From Selaginella moellendorffii (Eukaryota > Plantae > Lycopodiophyta), in the NCBI RefSeq assembly GCF_000143415.4, contig NW_003314392.1:1-9554 (forward strand): a stretch of 9,554 bases of DNA, given 5' to 3'. How positions within the stretch are numbered: position 1 is the stretch's first letter; every line of letters begins with the position of its first letter. A program made the translations under genes and the position numbers. Shown piece after piece: positions 1 to 9,554 of this stretch. Below the pieces are notes generated by a model. It searched no databases and had not been told where the DNA came from. It was given only the letters and a program-made list of their open reading frames with translations.

Positions 1-595
1 GGCACATGGGAGTTACTGGGGCGGTGCGCGCAACTGGCCCATGTGGCCAAGTACATTTTTCCATGTCCTGGGCGCCTGCTTTTGTGGTTTTTCCCACGGA
101 AGAAGATGCGTCCCACGTGGCGATCCGTGTGCCCGCCCGCACTCCGGCACCAACGGGGCCGGCCGGCGTGACGCCCCGGTCGCGGCCGTGCCAACGGATC
201 GCGGGCCCCATGCGTGGGCTGCCGCCGGGAGTGCATCTCACTCTCGAGGAAAACACCGCACTGGCGCTCGGGCCTGCACTGGAACGCGACCCCAGGAGCG
301 CCGTGGCGAAGCCCGCGTCGAGGGCATCGATCCGAATTGGCTGGGCCCCCCATGCCATGCTGGCACCGTGCGTGCCTTGTCGAAAACGGCACACCCTTGC
401 GACCGCTGGGCGAAAGGGGCAAACCCCGAGAGGTCCTTGCACCTCCTGTCACTGGGGAGGGTGCCCCCCACGAACACGAACCCAACGGCGCCAGTCCCAC
501 GCGAAACGCACGCACGGTTCGCGAGAAAACGGCCCCCAACGCCCGCATTCTCCATTATTCCGAGAGAATATTCCCTCCACTACTTAAATTGTGCC

Positions 596-600
596 AAAAA
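596..600 (-). terminator. Pol III oligo-T terminator (T5); present in all 8 units
   Basis: AAAAA on + is TTTTT on -, directly after the 3' arm of the terminal stem. Runs of 4-5 or more T terminate Pol III, and the minus-strand body has no internal T4 run. Confidence 0.6.
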
Positions 601-692
601 GAGGTGGCTCCGGGTGGGTCTCGACCCAGGGACCTATTTGAGTGGACTTGTTTTTAGATTGGGGGTCTCTGCCACTAGGCCTCTACCACCTC
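596..692 (-). ncRNA. Putative Pol III small RNA gene, vault-RNA-like/tRNA-related (copy 1)
   Basis: Minus strand reads GAGGTGGTAGAGGCCTAGTGGCAGAGACCCCCAATCTAAAAACAAGTCCACTCAAATAGGTCCCTGGGTCGAGACCCACCCGGAGCCACCTC-TTTTT. A-box-like AGGCCTAGTGG (682-672), B-box-like GGGTCGAGACC (627-617), terminal stem GAGGTGGT/GCCACCTC, T5 at 600-596, upstream AT box. The 5' end is inferred and could be 692-695. Confidence 0.65.
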
Positions 693-714
693 TCCGTTAC
701 ATATTTCGTGTCGG

Positions 715-725
715 TTAAATTTATT
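715..725 (-). promoter_or_regulatory. TATA-like element of the putative Pol III gene; present in all 8 units
   Basis: AATAAATTTAA on -, an 11-bp pure A/T run in a GC-rich unit, at -33 to -23 relative to 692, which is the usual TBP/TFIIIB position. Confidence 0.5.
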
Positions 726-902
726 GGGTTTGTGGGGGAGGGGGTTTAACTAGCAAAGGGCGATTATGGGGAGCGCTTAGTGCGATTAAGTGGGGCTTAA
801 GTTGGGGCAATCGCGGCCGTCGGTGCGGTGGGGTGGTTGACCGGCGGCGATGAGTTTGACCGGCGGTCCCCGTGACACGTGGCTAGGGCTAGGGTCTGGA
901 TA

Positions 903-1196
903 TGGGTTTTGCGCGAGTGGGCAAGATCCATGGCTCGGTTTGCGGTGGGACTTGAACCGTTGGAAAGCTTGCGTGAGTCCACCCGTTTCCACAGAAACGG
1001 ATCTGGATTTCGTCGCTCCACCGGCCCGCACCATTGCGATGGGTTTGACGCTGGGTTTTCGAGCGAGTGGGCAACATCCATGGCTCGGTTTGCGGTGGGA
1101 CTTGAACCGTTGGAAAGCTTGCGTGAGTCCACCCGTTTCCACAGAAACGGATCCCGATTTCGTTGCTCCACCGTCCCACACCATTGCAATGGGTTT
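903..1196. repeat. Two internal subrepeats of 150-bp period (A ~903-1046, B ~1052-1196). Same pair in units 2, 3, 6 and 7; single hybrid in unit 4; B disrupted in unit 5; A only (window end) in unit 8
   Basis: 78-bp identical core at 926-1003 and 1076-1153, with diagnostic differences outside it (CAAGATCC vs CAACATCC; GATCTGG vs GATCCCG). Confidence 0.97.
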
Positions 1197-1844
1197 TGTG
1201 CTGTTCCCGTTGCCATATCTCGTGGACCGTGGGCCCCCTTTCGCCCTTGGGCACATGGGAGCAACTGGGGCGGTGCGCGCAACTGGCCCATGTGGCCAAG
1301 TACATTTTTCCATGTCCTGGGCGCCTGCTTTTGTGGTTTTTCCCACGGAAGAAGATGCGTCCCACGTGGCGATCCGTGTGCCCGCCCGCACTCCGGCACC
1401 AACGGGGCCGGCCGGCGTGACGCCCCGGTCGCGGCCGTGCCAACGGATCGCGGGCCCCATGCGTGGGCTGCCGCCGGGAGTGCATCTCACTCTCGAGGAA
1501 AACACCGCACTGGCGCTCGGGCCTGCACTGGAACGCGACCCCAGGAGCGCCGTGGCGAAGCCCGCGTCGAGGGCATCGATCCGAATTGGCTGGGCCCCCC
1601 ATGCCATGCTGGCACCGTGCGTGCCTTGTCGAAAACGGCACACCCTTGCGACCGCTGGGCGAAAGGGGCAAACCCCGAGAGGTCCTTGCACCTCCTGTCA
1701 CTGGGGAGGGTGCCCCCCACGAACACGAACCCAACGGCGCCAGTCCCACGCGAAACGCACGCACGGTTCGCGAGAAAACGGCCCCCAACGCCCGCATTCT
1801 CCATTATTCCGAGAGAATATTCCCTCCACTACTTAAATTGTGCC

Positions 1845-1941
1845 AAAAAGAGGTGGCTCCGGGTGGGTCTCGACCCAGGGACCTATTTGAGTGGACTTGT
1901 TTTTAGATTGGGGGTCTCTGCCACTAGGCCTCTACCACCTC
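1845..1941 (-). ncRNA. Putative Pol III small RNA gene (copy 2)
   Basis: Same sequence as copy 1 by eye. Confidence 0.65.
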
Positions 1942-3093
1942 TCCGTTACATATTTCGTGTCGGTTAAATTTATTGGGTTTGTGGGGGAGGGGGTTTAACT
2001 AGCAAAGGGCGATTATGGGGAGCGCTTAGTGCGATTAAGTGGGGCTTAAGTTGGGGCAATCGCGGCCGTCGGTGCGGTGGGGTGGTTGACCGGCGGCGAT
2101 GAGTTTGACCGGCGGTCCCCGTGACACGTGGCTAGGGCTAGGGTCTGGATATGGGTTTTGCGCGAGTGGGCAAGATCCATGGCTCGGTTTGCGGTGGGAC
2201 TTGAACCGTTGGAAAGCTTGCGTGAGTCCACCCGTTTCCACAGAAACGGATCTGGATTTCGTCGCTCCACCGGCCCGCACCATTGCGATGGGTTTGACGC
2301 TGGGTTTTCGAGCGAGTGGGCAACATCCATGGCTCGGTTTGCGGTGGGACTTGAACCGTTGGAAAGCTTGCGTGAGTCCACCCGTTTCCACAGAAACGGA
2401 TCCCGATTTCGTTGCTCCACCGTCCCACACCATTGCAATGGGTTTTGTGCTGTTCCCGTTGCCATATCTCGTGGACCGTGGGCCCCCTTTCGCCCTTGGG
2501 CACATGGGAGCAACTGGGGCGGTGCGCGCAACTGGCCCATGTGGCCAAGTACATTTTTCCATGTCCTGGGCGCCTGCTTTTGTGGTTTTTCCCACGGAAG
2601 AAGATGCGTCCCACGTGGCGATCCGTGTGCCCGCCCGCACTCCGGCACCAACGGGGCCGGCCGGCGTGACGCCCCGGTCGCGGCCGTGCCAACGGATCGC
2701 GGGCCCCATGCGTGGGCTGCCGCCGGGAGTGCATCTCACTCTCGAGGAAAACACCGCACTGGCGCTCGGGCCTGCACTGGAACGCGACCCCAGGAGCGCC
2801 GTGGCGAAGCCCGCGTCGAGGGCATCGATCCGAATTGGCTGGGCCCCCCATGCCATGCTGGCACCGTGCGTGCCTTGTCGAAAACGGCACACCCTTGCGA
2901 CCGCTGGGCGAAAGGGGCAAACCCCGAGAGGTCCTTGCACCTCCTGTCACTGGGGAGGGTGCCCCCCACGAACACGAACCCAACGGCGCCAGTCCCACGC
3001 GAAACGCACGCACGGTTCGCGAGAAAACGGCCCCCAACGCCCGCATTCTCCATTATTCCGAGAGAATATTCCCTCCACTACTTAAATTGTGCC

Positions 3094-3190
3094 AAAAAGA
3101 GGTGGCTCCGGGTGGGTCTCGACCCAGGGACCTATTTGAGTGGACTTGTTTTTAGATTGGGGGTCTCTGCCACTAGGCCTCTACCACCTC
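3094..3190 (-). ncRNA. Putative Pol III small RNA gene (copy 3)
   Basis: Same sequence as copy 1 by eye. Confidence 0.65.
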
Positions 3191-4222
3191 TCCGTTACAT
3201 ATTTCGTGTCGGTTAAATTTATTGGGTTTGTGGGGGAGGGGGTTTAACTAGCAAAGGGCGATTATGGGGAGCGCTTAGTGCGATTAAGTGGGGCTTAAGT
3301 TGGGGCAATCGCGGCCGTCGGTGCGGTGGGGTGGTTGACCGGCGGCGATGAGTTTGACCGGCGGTCCCCGTGACACGTGGCTAGGGCTAGGGTCTGGATA
3401 TGGGTTTTGCGCGAGTGGGCAAGATCCATGGCTCGGTTTGCGGTGGGACTTGAACCGTTGGAAAGCTTGCGTGAGTCCACCCGTTTCCACAGAAACGGAT
3501 CTGGATTTCGTCGCTCCACCGGCCCGCACCATTGCGATGGGTTTGACGCTGGGTTTTCGAGCGAGTGGGCAACATCCATGGCTCGGTTTGCGGTGGGACT
3601 TGAACCGTTGGAAAGCTTGCGTGAGTCCACCCGTTTCCACAGAAACGGATCCCGATTTCGTTGCTCCACCGTCCCACACCATTGCAATGGGTTTTGTGCT
3701 GTTCCCGTTGCCATATCTCGTGGACCGTGGGCCCCCTTTCGCCCTTGGGCACATGGGAGCAACTGGGGCGGTGCGCGCAACTGGCCCATGTGGCCAAGTA
3801 CATTTTTCCATGTCCTGGGCGCCTGCTTTTGTGGTTTTTCCCACGGAAGAAGATGCGTCCCACGTGGCGATCCGTGTGCCCGCCCGCACTCCGGCACCAA
3901 CGGGGCCGGCCGGCGTGACGCCCCGGTCGCGGCCGTGCCAACGGATCGCGGGCCCCATGCGTGGGCTGCCGCCGGGAGTGCATCTCACTCTCGAGGAAAA
4001 CACCGCACTGGCGCTCGGGCCTGCACTGGAACGCGACCCCAGGAGCGCCGTGGCGAAGCCCGCGTCGAGGGCATCGATCCGAATTGGCTGGGCCCCCCAT
4101 GCCATGCTGGCACCGTGCGTGCCTTGTCGAAAACGGCACACCCTTGCGACCGCTGGGCGAAAGGGGCAAACCCCGAGAGGTCCTTGCACCTCCTGTCACT
4201 GGGGAGGGTGCCCCCCACGAAC

Positions 4223-4226
4223 GTCT
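4223..4226. other. Deletion junction: 116 bp (unit positions 476-591) replaced by GTCT
   Basis: CCCCCACGAAC-GTCT-TGCCAAAAAG versus the full sequence in other units. The net -112 matches the ORF coordinate shift. Confidence 0.93.
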
Positions 4227-4230
4227 TGCC

Positions 4231-4327
4231 AAAAAGAGGTGGCTCCGGGTGGGTCTCGACCCAGGGACCTATTTGAGTGGACTTGTTTTTAGATTGGGGG
4301 TCTCTGCCACTAGGCCTCTACCACCTC
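4231..4327 (-). ncRNA. Putative Pol III small RNA gene (copy 4; downstream flank deleted)
   Basis: Same sequence as copy 1. The adjacent deletion ends 4 bp beyond the T5 run. Confidence 0.65.
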
Positions 4328-4537
4328 TCCGTTACATATTTCGTGTCGGTTAAATTTATTGGGTTTGTGGGGGAGGGGGTTTAACTAGCAAAGGGCGATT
4401 ATGGGGAGCGCTTAGTGCGATTAAGTGGGGCTTAAGTTGGGGCAATCGCGGCCGTCGGTGCGGTGGGGTGGTTGACCGGCGGCGATGAGTTTGACCGGCG
4501 GTCCCCGTGACACGTGGCTAGGGCTAGGGTCTGGATA

Positions 4538-4681
4538 TGGGTTTTGCGCGAGTGGGCAAGATCCATGGCTCGGTTTGCGGTGGGACTTGAACCGTTGGAA
4601 AGCTTGCGTGAGTCCACCCGTTTCCACAGAAACGGATCCCGATTTCGTTGCTCCACCGTCCCACACCATTGCAATGGGTTT
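4538..4681. repeat. Single A/B hybrid subrepeat (exact 150-bp loss)
   Basis: Starts with A-type bases (GCGCGAGTGGGCAAG) and ends with B-type bases (GATCCCG...CCATTGCAATGG). Confidence 0.95.
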
Positions 4682-5329
4682 TGTGCTGTTCCCGTTGCCA
4701 TATCTCGTGGACCGTGGGCCCCCTTTCGCCCTTGGGCACATGGGAGCAACTGGGGCGGTGCGCGCAACTGGCCCATGTGGCCAAGTACATTTTTCCATGT
4801 CCTGGGCGCCTGCTTTTGTGGTTTTTCCCACGGAAGAAGATGCGTCCCACGTGGCGATCCGTGTGCCTGCCCGCACTCCGGCACCAACGGGGCCGGCCGG
4901 CGTGACGCCCCGGTCGCGGCCGTGCCAACGGATCGCGGGCCCCATGCGTGGGCTGCCGCCGGGAGTGCATCTCACTCTCGAGGAAAACACCGCACTGGCG
5001 CTCGGGCCTGCACTGGAACGCGACCCCAGGAGCGCCGTGGCGAAGCCCGCGTCGAGGGCATCGATCCGAATTGGCTGGGCCCCCCATGCCATGCTGGCAC
5101 CGTGCGTGCCTTGTCGAAAACGGCACACCCTTGCGACCGCTGGGCGAAAGGGGCAAACCCCGAGAGGTCCTTGCACCTCCTGTCACTGGGGAGGGTGCCC
5201 CCCACGAACACGAACCCAACGGCGCCAGTCCCACGCGAAACGCACGCACGGTTCGCGAGAAAACGGCCCCCAACGCCCGCATTCTCCATTATTCCGAGAG
5301 AATATTCCCTCCACTACTTAAATTGTGCC

Positions 5330-5426
5330 AAAAAGAGGTGGCTCCGGGTGGGTCTCGACCCAGGGACCTATTTGAGTGGACTTGTTTTTAGATTGGGGGT
5401 CTCTGCCACTAGGCCTCTACCACCTC
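5330..5426 (-). ncRNA. Putative Pol III small RNA gene (copy 5)
   Basis: Same sequence as copy 1 by eye. Confidence 0.65.
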
Positions 5427-5884
5427 TCCGTTACATATTTCGTGTCGGTTAAATTTATTGGGTTTGTGGGGGAGGGGGTTTAACTAGCAAAGGGCGATTA
5501 TGGGGAGCGCTTAGTGCGATTAAGTGGGGCTTAAGTTGGGGCAATCGCGGCCGTCGGTGCGGTGGGGTGGTTGACCGGCGGCGATGAGTTTGACCGGCGG
5601 TCCCCGTGACACGTGGCTAGGGCTAGGGTCTGGATATGGGTTTTGCGCGAGTGGGCAAGATCCATGGCTCGGTTTGCGGTGGGACTTGAACCGTTGGAAA
5701 GCTTGCGTGAGTCCACCCGTTTCCACAGAAACGGATCTGGATTTCGTCGCTCCACCGGCCCGCACCATTGCGATGGGTTTGACGCTGGGTTTTCGAGCGA
5801 GTGGGCAACATCCATGGCTCGGTTTGCGGTGGGACTTGAACCGTTGGAAAGCTTGCGTGAGTCCACCCGTTCCACAGAAACGGA

Positions 5885-5954
5885 AGTGAATGTCAAGGAA
5901 GGAGACGACAGTCACCTTGATGGGTGTTTACGGTAGAGTTGGCGAACACAGTTG
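5885..5954. other. 70-bp non-array insert replacing 36 bp of subrepeat B
   Basis: AGTGAATGTCAAGG...GAACACAGTTG occurs once in the window. It replaces unit positions 1152-1187, with a further 1-bp T loss near 5870; the net +33 matches the unit length of 1,282. Confidence 0.93.
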
Positions 5955-6611
5955 AATGGGTTTTGTGCTGTTCCCGTTGCCATATCTCGTGGACCGTGGG
6001 CCCCCTTTCGCCCTTGGGCACATGGGAGCAACTGGGGCGGTGCGCGCAACTGGCCCATGTGGCCAAGTACATTTTTCCATGTCCTGGGCGCCTGCTTTTG
6101 TGGTTTTTCCCACGGAAGAAGATGCGTCCCACGTGGCGATCCGTGTGCCTGCCCGCACTCCGGCACCAACGGGGCCGGCCGGCGTGACGCCCCGGTCGCG
6201 GCCGTGCCAACGGATCGCGGGCCCCATGCGTGGGCTGCCGCCGGGAGTGCATCTCACTCTCGAGGAAAACACCGCACTGGCGCTCGGGCCTGCACTGGAA
6301 CGCGACCCCAGGAGCGCCGTGGCGAAGCCCGCGTCGAGGGCATCGATCCGAATTGGCTGGGCCCCCCATGCCATGCTGGCACCGTGCGTGCCTTGTCGAA
6401 AACGGCACACCCTTGCGACCGCTGGGCGAAAGGGGCAAACCCCGAGAGGTCCTTGCACCTCCTGTCACTGGGGAGGGTGCCCCCCACGAACACGAACCCA
6501 ACGGCGCCAGTCCCACGCGAAACGCACGCACGGTTCGCGAGAAAACGGCCCCCAACGCCCGCATTCTCCATTATTCCGAGAGAATATTCCCTCCACTACT
6601 TAAATTGTGCC

Positions 6612-6708
6612 AAAAAGAGGTGGCTCCGGGTGGGTCTCGACCCAGGGACCTATTTGAGTGGACTTGTTTTTAGATTGGGGGTCTCTGCCACTAGGCCTCT
6701 ACCACCTC
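6612..6708 (-). ncRNA. Putative Pol III small RNA gene (copy 6)
   Basis: Same sequence as copy 1 by eye. Confidence 0.65.
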
Positions 6709-7860
6709 TCCGTTACATATTTCGTGTCGGTTAAATTTATTGGGTTTGTGGGGGAGGGGGTTTAACTAGCAAAGGGCGATTATGGGGAGCGCTTAGTGCG
6801 ATTAAGTGGGGCTTAAGTTGGGGCAATCGCGGCCGTCGGTGCGGTGGGGTGGTTGACCGGCGGCGATGAGTTTGACCGGCGGTCCCCGTGACACGTGGCT
6901 AGGGCTAGGGTCTGGATATGGGTTTTGCGCGAGTGGGCAAGATCCATGGCTCGGTTTGCGGTGGGACTTGAACCGTTGGAAAGCTTGCGTGAGTCCACCC
7001 GTTTCCACAGAAACGGATCTGGATTTCGTCGCTCCACCGGCCCGCACCATTGCGATGGGTTTGACGCTGGGTTTTCGAGCGAGTGGGCAACATCCATGGC
7101 TCGGTTTGCGGTGGGACTTGAACCGTTGGAAAGCTTGCGTGAGTCCACCCGTTTCCACAGAAACGGATCCCGATTTCGTTGCTCCACCGTCCCACACCAT
7201 TGCAATGGGTTTTGTGCTGTTCCCGTTGCCATATCTCGTGGACCGTGGGCCCCCTTTCGCCCTTGGGCACATGGGAGCAACTGGGGCGGTGCGCGCAACT
7301 GGCCCATGTGGCCAAGTACATTTTTCCATGTCCTGGGCGCCTGCTTTTGTGGTTTTTCCCACGGAAGAAGATGCGTCCCACGTGGCGATCCGTGTGCCTG
7401 CCCGCACTCCGGCACCAACGGGGCCGGCCGGCGTGACGCCCCGGTCGCGGCCGTGCCAACGGATCGCGGGCCCCATGCGTGGGCTGCCGCCGGGAGTGCA
7501 TCTCACTCTCGAGGAAAACACCGCACTGGCGCTCGGGCCTGCACTGGAACGCGACCCCAGGAGCGCCGTGGCGAAGCCCGCGTCGAGGGCATCGATCCGA
7601 ATTGGCTGGGCCCCCCATGCCATGCTGGCACCGTGCGTGCCTTGTCGAAAACGGCACACCCTTGCGACCGCTGGGCGAAAGGGGCAAACCCCGAGAGGTC
7701 CTTGCACCTCCTGTCACTGGGGAGGGTGCCCCCCACGAACACGAACCCAACGGCGCCAGTCCCACGCGAAACGCACGCACGGTTCGCGAGAAAACGGCCC
7801 CCAACGCCCGCATTCTCCATTATTCCGAGAGAATATTCCCTCCACTACTTAAATTGTGCC

Positions 7861-7957
7861 AAAAAGAGGTGGCTCCGGGTGGGTCTCGACCCAGGGACCT
7901 ATTTGAGTGGACTTGTTTTTAGATTGGGGGTCTCTGCCACTAGGCCTCTACCACCTC
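7861..7957 (-). ncRNA. Putative Pol III small RNA gene (copy 7)
   Basis: Same sequence as copy 1 by eye. Confidence 0.65.
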
Positions 7958-9109
7958 TCCGTTACATATTTCGTGTCGGTTAAATTTATTGGGTTTGTGG
8001 GGGAGGGGGTTTAACTAGCAAAGGGCGATTATGGGGAGCGCTTAGTGCGATTAAGTGGGGCTTAAGTTGGGGCAATCGCGGCCGTCGGTGCGGTGGGGTG
8101 GTTGACCGGCGGCGATGAGTTTGACCGGCGGTCCCCGTGACACGTGGCTAGGGCTAGGGTCTGGATATGGGTTTTGCGCGAGTGGGCAAGATCCATGGCT
8201 CGGTTTGCGGTGGGACTTGAACCGTTGGAAAGCTTGCGTGAGTCCACCCGTTTCCACAGAAACGGATCTGGATTTCGTCGCTCCACCGGCCCGCACCATT
8301 GCGATGGGTTTGACGCTGGGTTTTCGAGCGAGTGGGCAACATCCATGGCTCGGTTTGCGGTGGGACTTGAACCGTTGGAAAGCTTGCGTGAGTCCACCCG
8401 TTTCCACAGAAACGGATCCCGATTTCGTTGCTCCACCGTCCCACACCATTGCAATGGGTTTTGTGCTGTTCCCGTTGCCATATCTCGTGGACCGTGGGCC
8501 CCCTTTCGCCCTTGGGCACATGGGAGCAACTGGGGCGGTGCGCGCAACTGGCCCATGTGGCCAAGTACATTTTTCCATGTCCTGGGCGCCTGCTTTTGTG
8601 GTTTTTCCCACGGAAGAAGATGCGTCCCACGTGGCGATCCGTGTGCCCGCCCGCACTCCGGCACCAACGGGGCCGGCCGGCGTGACGCCCCGGTCGCGGC
8701 CGTGCCAACGGATCGCGGGCCCCATGCGTGGGCTGCCGCCGGGAGTGCATCTCACTCTCGAGGAAAACACCGCACTGGCGCTCGGGCCTGCACTGGAACG
8801 CGACCCCAGGAGCGCCGTGGCGAAGCCCGCGTCGAGGGCATCGATCCGAATTGGCTGGGCCCCCCATGCCATGCTGGCACCGTGCGTGCCTTGTCGAAAA
8901 CGGCACACCCTTGCGACCGCTGGGCGAAAGGGGCAAACCCCGAGAGGTCCTTGCACCTCCTGTCACTGGGGAGGGTGCCCCCCACGAACACGAACCCAAC
9001 GGCGCCAGTCCCACGCGAAACGCACGCACGGTTCGCGAGAAAACGGCCCCCAACGCCCGCATTCTCCATTATTCCGAGAGAATATTCCCTCCACTACTTA
9101 AATTGTGCC

Positions 9110-9206
9110 AAAAAGAGGTGGCTCCGGGTGGGTCTCGACCCAGGGACCTATTTGAGTGGACTTGTTTTTAGATTGGGGGTCTCTGCCACTAGGCCTCTAC
9201 CACCTC
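9110..9206 (-). ncRNA. Putative Pol III small RNA gene (copy 8)
   Basis: Same sequence as copy 1 by eye. Confidence 0.65.
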
Positions 9207-9554
9207 TCCGTTACATATTTCGTGTCGGTTAAATTTATTGGGTTTGTGGGGGAGGGGGTTTAACTAGCAAAGGGCGATTATGGGGAGCGCTTAGTGCGAT
9301 TAAGTGGGGCTTAAGTTGGGGCAATCGCGGCCGTCGGTGCGGTGGGGTGGTTGACCGGCGGCGATGAGTTTGACCGGCGGTCCCCGTGACACGTGGCTAG
9401 GGCTAGGGTCTGGATATGGGTTTTGCGCGAGTGGGCAAGATCCATGGCTCGGTTTGCGGTGGGACTTGAACCGTTGGAAAGCTTGCGTGAGTCCACCCGT
9501 TTCCACAGAAACGGATCTGGATTTCGTCGCTCCACCGGCCCGCACCATTGCGAT

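Follow-up and report, generated by a model that had tools for sequence, protein, structure and literature searches.

Organization of the tandem array

The window analyzed here, by which we mean the whole 9,554-base stretch of Selaginella DNA, was found to be a tandem repeat throughout (1..9554), with approximately 7.6 units and a standard unit of 1,249 bp. The units are arranged head-to-tail and unit alignment showed them to be 99–100% identical, with about four substitutions in total among the eight units, an organization which identifies the 1,249-bp repeat as a satellite-type tandem array. Within the window, a repeat finder identified a 300-nt block present as eight in-register copies that were 100% identical, with block-to-block spacings of 1249, 1249, 1137, 1099, 1282, 1249 and 1249 bp. 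This block includes a 130-nt cassette which extends, on the minus strand, from an AT-rich box to a run of five T residues (T5). The first copy of the cassette occupies 596..725, and the RNA predicted from it would extend from 692 to approximately 596 (93–97 nt). An exact-match search of the window identified seven further copies, all identical to the first and all on the minus strand, at 1845..1974, 3094..3223, 4231..4360, 5330..5459, 6612..6741, 7861..7990 and 9110..9239.

The three unit-length variants (1,137, 1,099 and 1,282 bp) were all located between 3090 and 6607, and each has retained the cassette. Their origins were a 112-bp deletion, the presence of a single subrepeat rather than two, and a divergent second subrepeat with a 34-bp insert, respectively. 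The deletion removed the 112 bp immediately 3′ of the terminator of the fourth cassette copy (equivalent to 478–589 of the first unit) and is seen at 4205–4230, the junction of units 3 and 4, where a 4-nt filler, GTCT, is present instead. Its endpoint is 4 nt from the T5 run, and the adjoining cassette is untouched.

The subrepeats are 150 bp in length and two are present in each standard unit (904..1203 in the first), where they are 93% alike; Tandem Repeats Finder detected this internal duplication once per unit. Both their number and their sequence differ among units. Each contains a hairpin with a perfect 7-bp stem and a loop of 4 nt (CCGTTTC-CACA-GAAACGG), at 983–1000 and 1133–1150 in the first unit. 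In the 1,282-bp unit, the second subrepeat (5788–5970) has kept the first ~100 nt, and its final third consists of divergent sequence that is 34 bp longer; this may be an older or recombinant variant of the subrepeat. A comparison of the cassette with the subrepeats as possible diverged copies of one another produced a local alignment score no better than those of shuffled sequences.

The composition of the unit is uneven, as the cassette lies in a discrete island of 46–57% GC (~551–800) amid spacer of 64–76% GC. The GC-rich spacer at 1–550 has a CpG observed/expected ratio of ~1.0, without depletion, and the ratio in the 97-nt region of the cassette RNA is 0.28, a value derived from very few sites. 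No protein-coding signal was identified in the unit, the long open reading frames of which are GC-rich noise with neither Pfam matches nor relatives.

Signals of the cassette and their chance expectation

The cassette was numbered along the minus strand with +1 set at 692. An AT-rich, TATA-like box, AATAAATTTAA, is located at 715..725 (−33 to −23). The 5′ strand of a terminal helix, GAGGTGG, lies at 686..692 and is followed by T-A, as at tRNA positions 8–9. An A-box-like element, AGGCCTAGTGG, is present at 672..682 (+11 to +21) and a B-box-like element, GGGTCGAGACC, at 617..627 (+66 to +76), matching TRGCNNAGTGG and GGTTCRANNCC, respectively, at 10 of 11 positions each. The 3′ strand of the helix, CCACCTC, lies at 601..607, and the T5 terminator, the unit's sole minus-strand T5, at 596..600. 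The initial annotation had proposed these five elements, ordered and spaced in this way on the minus strand, and all were recovered where it had placed them, in identical form in eight of the eight copies. It had also cautioned that both boxes depart from consensus, and this proved correct, each having its single mismatch. That of the B-box-like element is a G at the conserved T54 position, or, equivalently, the element is one T short.

The spacing of these elements is that of a class-2 Pol III gene. The A-box-like element begins at +11, within the ~10–20 nt from the start that is typical of the class, and the gap from A box to B box is 44 nt, within the class-2 range of 30–60 nt. There are no internal runs of three or more T residues in the predicted RNA, leaving the terminal run, of the T4-or-longer kind, as the only terminator; counted to the end of this run the RNA would be 97 nt. 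The terminal helix comprises seven Watson-Crick pairs (692–686 with 607–601) and can be extended outward to approximately ten if one A-T and two G-T pairs are added. The B-box-like element GGGTCGAGACC is contained within a 4-bp stem and 6-nt loop resembling a T arm minus one T. The predicted minimum free energy fold had three parts: the terminal helix, an extended but imperfect 5′ arm that carries an A-rich loop of 23 nt, and a 3′ hairpin. Its stability was no greater than that of shuffled sequence (z = −0.4), with 67 of 200 shuffles folding equally well.

Upstream of the start, the −20 to −1 region has no CAA triplet, and the TATA-like AT box is present at −33 to −23. A CAA triplet within −1 to −20 has been considered important in plant work (cited in PMC7544208), and the clustered Ser tDNAs of Arabidopsis are likewise without one (PMC7544208).

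Several further features of the sequence around the cassette were observed. Directly upstream of it, the plus strand at 726–771 is strongly G-rich (GGGTTTGTGGGGGAGGGGGTTTAA...GGG...GGGG) and includes telomere-repeat-like pieces (GGGTTT) and pieces able to form a G-quadruplex. Two AAACCC motifs, at approximately −37 to −57 on the cassette strand, recall the plant telo-box. A (CTAGGG)2 motif is present at 883–894. In addition, a 7-bp direct repeat, TTAAATT, at 583–589 and 716–722, brackets the 126 bp (590–715) that contain the cassette; this pair could be a leftover target-site duplication or a chance occurrence in an AT-rich island, and it overlaps part of the AT box.

How often such a layout would arise by chance was assessed by shuffling the unit 20,000 times with its dinucleotide composition preserved and scanning both strands of each shuffle. 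The individual boxes were not unusual: a shuffled window had approximately four A-box-like and 7.7 B-box-like matches, which corresponds to ~0.5 and ~1 for each unit. Correctly ordered and spaced A and B boxes occurred together in 143 of the 20,000 shuffles, and were followed by T4 within 40 nt in nine. The combination of both boxes, T4 and a bracketing 7-bp terminal helix was found in none. By rough arithmetic from these shuffle counts, the full pattern is expected at about 1e-6 per unit, that is, at less than about one occurrence per 100–200 Mb genome. Since the full combination was absent from all 20,000 shuffles, the layout is not attributable to chance and would have been inherited from some real Pol III gene. 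The proposal of the initial annotation that each 1,249-bp unit carries one type-2 Pol III layout is thereby strengthened, as the cassette is, by sequence, a complete class-2 unit beyond chance expectation.

We weighed nonetheless whether the cassette could be a chance constellation of short motifs within a satellite. The A box and the B box each occur at chance frequency when taken alone, and many windows were scanned, which introduces a look-elsewhere effect. Against this, the full combination was not reproduced in any shuffled unit and the cassette occupies a distinct AT-rich island. Based on these considerations, we regard a chance origin as very improbable.

The type of gene from which the layout was inherited is indicated by remnants that were recognized by eye. 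These are the 7-bp acceptor-like helix followed by T-A, the AGTGG within the A box, and AGGTCCCTGGGTCGAGACCCAC, which approximates a variable region plus T arm. Most likely, then, the cassette descends from a tRNA-type gene, the resemblance being at the level of motifs only.

The cassette is not the only part of the unit with B-box-like sequence. A perfect B box, GGTTCAAGTCC, is present in each subrepeat (948..958 in the first and 1098..1108 in the second), and a fourth B-box-like motif, GGATCGATGCC, with one mismatch, is located at 323..333, all on the cassette strand. The subrepeat B boxes have no accompanying A box or T-run, and the similarity of the subrepeats to the cassette was not significant. 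These motifs raise the alternative that the unit acts at the DNA level, as a B-box platform recruiting TFIIIC and serving as a chromatin boundary (ETC/COC-like) or as a positional landing pad for retrotransposons, and yielding scarcely any RNA or none at all. Four B-box-like motifs share the minus strand of the unit, versus approximately one expected per unit on both strands, and LINEs that target Pol III complexes exist in Dictyostelium (PMC5391098). However, the perfect pair are copies of one subrepeat, leaving only three independent motifs, and because of this duplication the excess per unit is just marginal. A platform would also leave the T5 run, the terminal helix and the AT box unexplained, and we consider this alternative improbable.

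Class assignment of the predicted RNA

Despite these remnants, the cassette was not recognized as a tRNA gene. ARAGORN made no call on the cassette strand with thresholds from the default down to 75%, or with intron and mitochondrial models, and its sole call, at the 75% threshold on the opposite strand, was junk. The Rfam tRNA and tRNA-Sec models did not match 171 nt around the cassette at E ≤ 10. When class-I, class-II and selenocysteine-type cloverleafs were attempted by hand, only the acceptor-like helix, the T-A at positions 8–9 and a 4-bp T-like hairpin could be placed. The hairpin, with its 6-nt loop, is 6–7 nt away from the 3′ strand of the helix, unlike a tRNA, in which a 5-bp T stem abuts the acceptor directly. 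No D or anticodon stem could be drawn, and the cassette RNA would be ~20 nt longer than a tRNA.

Searches for other classes used the 4,227 families of Rfam 15, against the whole window at E ≤ 1 and against the cassette and subrepeats separately at E ≤ 10. No family matched, the Vault, Y RNA, tRNA, tRNA-Sec, 5S, snRNA and hammerhead models all being negative, and the vault RNA model (RF00006) was without a match to the cassette even at the permissive threshold. The only matches returned, all at chance level, were to a snoRNA of trypanosomes, two miRNAs and a region of a fly lncRNA. The cassette is also not a plant type-3 (U6-like) Pol III gene. In the type-3 layout an upstream sequence element (USE) lies ~25 bp upstream of the TATA box, and a search for RTCCCACATCG with up to two mismatches produced matches at 110 and 1173 alone, both of them plus-strand and neither upstream of the cassette.

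The repeat was not described in the literature we found on Selaginella telomeres, tRNA and transposons, and the diagnostic strings of the cassette matched no paper. The initial annotation had been unable to assign the RNA to the tRNA or 5S classes, and the ARAGORN and Rfam results agree with this. Together, these data define the tandem units as being of Pol III type by their signals, which are so far undescribed, and as encoding a putative orphan product that is not a tRNA.

An alternative origin is that the cassette is an inactive passenger, a relic of a decayed tRNA pseudogene or of a tRNA-derived mobile element (the head of a SINE, or a Helenus-type TRIM represented by a solo LTR) that was present in the founding unit and co-amplified with it. 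One candidate is Helenus-1_SMo, a tRNA-derived family from S. moellendorffii; its 120-bp LTR opens with TGT and closes with ACA, and a T-run is found close to the 3′ end (PMC10886601 supplement). The cassette comes from the same species, and its segment 701–590 has TGT and ACA at its termini and a T-run that stops a few bases short of the end; both are tRNA-derived segments of ~110–120 bp with A and B boxes. The TTAAATT repeat around 590–715 is a further point in favor of a relic, a weak one given the AT-rich island. As the copies are 99–100% identical, intact signals need not mean selection.

Several findings count against such a relic. A target-site duplication is absent, as the 5 bp beside the TGT...ACA ends differ (AAATA versus ATTTA), and there is no internal region and no second LTR-like copy within the unit. 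Compared by eye, the Helenus-1_SMo LTR differs in sequence and shares just generic tRNA motifs with the cassette; moreover, the cassette occupies a constant position in the satellite unit instead of being scattered. An origin as a SINE is opposed by the lack of a body and tail, since the T5 run directly abuts the terminal helix, and by a flanking repeat which is just a weak, AT-rich 7-bp match. A perfect 7-bp bracketing helix would also be unexpected in a randomly decaying pseudogene. We therefore rejected both a SINE and a Helenus-type LTR/TRIM or solo LTR as assignments for the cassette, and regard a relic of any of these kinds as unlikely.

The contrast between what has been kept and what has been lost is informative with regard to the ancestor of the cassette. 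The boxes, the termini and the terminator are present but the cloverleaf interior is gone, which suggests that the ancestor was selected for transcription and pairing of its ends, and not for decoding. The copies within the window, with only ~4 substitutions in eight units, were too uniform for the conservation of the cassette to be contrasted with that of the spacer, and with eight identical cassettes no compensatory pair was visible. Searches for relatives, made via the spurious open reading frames and by two pattern scans of metagenome contigs, came back blank; the collections are poor in plant DNA, and these blanks are uninformative as to absence.

Expression, copy number and comparison with known systems

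In a sequencing-run index the unit was listed only for runs of the same organism, none of which are recorded as RNA. A contig set compared with 1197–2300 gave flat coverage with unit joined to unit, as expected of genomic DNA. Three RNA-seq runs from 2026 (~9.2 million reads sampled from each) had zero reads on the unit over 1197–2300, a result obtained without a positive control and from libraries of a kind in which ~100-nt RNAs are lost. Twelve further runs listed for the species, guessed to be RNA, contained none of the words sampled from the cassette. The zeros in the RNA-seq runs argue against long polyadenylated satellite transcripts.

These data bear on the proposal that each unit encodes an actively expressed new small RNA, the array being a multigene family like 5S rDNA with an abundant ~95-nt panhandle product that has a Y- or vault-like ribonucleoprotein role. 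Such a proposal draws on the completeness of the promoter, terminator and terminal helix, a combination improbable by chance, and on the loss of the cloverleaf interior from between retained boxes and termini, a pattern that would be produced by selection on transcription and end-pairing. The arrangement of gene, spacer and subrepeats also resembles that of 5S or tDNA arrays. On the other hand, no transcript was seen in any run examined, the fold z-score was only −0.4, the RNA has no relative in Rfam, and land plants probably have neither vault particles nor the major vault protein (PMC3762200). Based on this balance, active expression appears rather unlikely. We also speculated about a broader form of this proposal, in which the cassette represents a lycophyte class of abundant Pol III RNA: a ~95-nt, tRNA-derived panhandle that ends in oligo-U and whose array genes number in the hundreds and are subtelomeric, with a ribonucleoprotein role as a counterpart of the Y and vault RNAs and with expression in tissues or conditions that were not sampled. 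That such a class exists we consider unlikely.

The explanation we tentatively prefer, which we rate as plausible though somewhat short of probable, is that each unit is a tRNA-derived class-2 Pol III mini-gene that is seemingly competent for transcription and is mostly silent or conditionally expressed, with a copy number set by satellite dynamics. Based on established Pol III biology, we infer that the A-box-like and B-box-like elements would be bound by TFIIIC and that TFIIIB would be positioned on the AT box at approximately −30. Minus-strand transcription by Pol III would then begin near 692–695 and terminate within the T5 run at 600–596. The predicted product, of 93–97 nt, would have its 5′ and 3′ ends paired in a helix of 7–10 bp and a U-tail of the kind bound by the La protein. 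Such an RNA would no longer be a tRNA, having lost the D, anticodon and full T stems and gained ~20 nt. By analogy with the tandem tDNA clusters of Arabidopsis, we infer that the array may be silent or transcribed conditionally, and the high copy number would be a consequence of satellite amplification and homogenization, not of a demand for the RNA.

The presence of all five elements in their places and their identity in the eight copies are consistent with a mostly silent mini-gene. The contrary points are the G at T54 of the B box, the lack of CAA in the −20 to −1 region, a fold no better than those of shuffles, and the lack of a match to the Rfam tRNA model. The suggestion in the initial annotation that amplification could mean a high-abundance RNA was not supported, as copy number is equally well explained by satellite dynamics and tandem plant tDNA clusters with intact signals show no transcription in most tissues (PMC7544208, PMC12308677).

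With no transcript seen in the runs examined, the cassette is a curiosity amenable to bench tests and not a proven new RNA. If it is transcribed, its product would be a new Pol III small RNA for land plants, the known Pol III repertoire of which is short and which are not known to have vault RNAs or Y RNAs. If it is silent, the array would be an example, outside the tRNAs, of tandem plant Pol III units with intact promoters, and would offer a natural system for studies of array silencing.

Among known Pol III products, vault RNA (RF00006) has a number of features in common with the predicted RNA, namely a length of ~90–100 nt, A and B boxes, an upstream AT/TATA element, panhandle ends and oligo-U. 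The B box of vault RNA is of the ...TCGAGACCC type. The cassette differs, however, in having no match to the vault RNA model, and vault RNA genes are few and do not form a satellite.

The tRNA clusters of Arabidopsis (SYY, Pro and Cys; PMC7544208, PMC12308677, PMC10701932) resemble the Selaginella array in having kb-scale tandem units in which A and B boxes are accompanied by an AT-rich upstream region and a poly-T run. They also provide the precedent for silence. Although all of these elements are intact, the tandem clusters are repressed (PMC7544208, PMC12308677). They form heterochromatic arrays with transcripts absent from most tissues despite intact signals. The tDNAs of these clusters can be transcribed singly, yet in the majority of tissues they are methylated and inactive; in root tips the Ser-Tyr-Tyr (SYY) cluster on chromosome 1 is reactivated (PMC7544208, PMC12308677). 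The Arabidopsis clusters encode genuine cloverleaf tRNAs, whereas the Selaginella cassette failed every tRNA test and has ~20 nt extra.

The tRNA arrays of Entamoeba (PMC2652664) provide a further comparison. They constitute a sizeable share of the genome and have been proposed to be located at chromosome ends (PMC2652664). While the Entamoeba arrays encode working tRNAs and some 5S RNA, and the predicted Selaginella product is not a tRNA and its host is a land plant, the two systems are alike in having Pol III genes, or what appear from their signals to be such genes, arranged in long tandem arrays with repeat-rich spacers.
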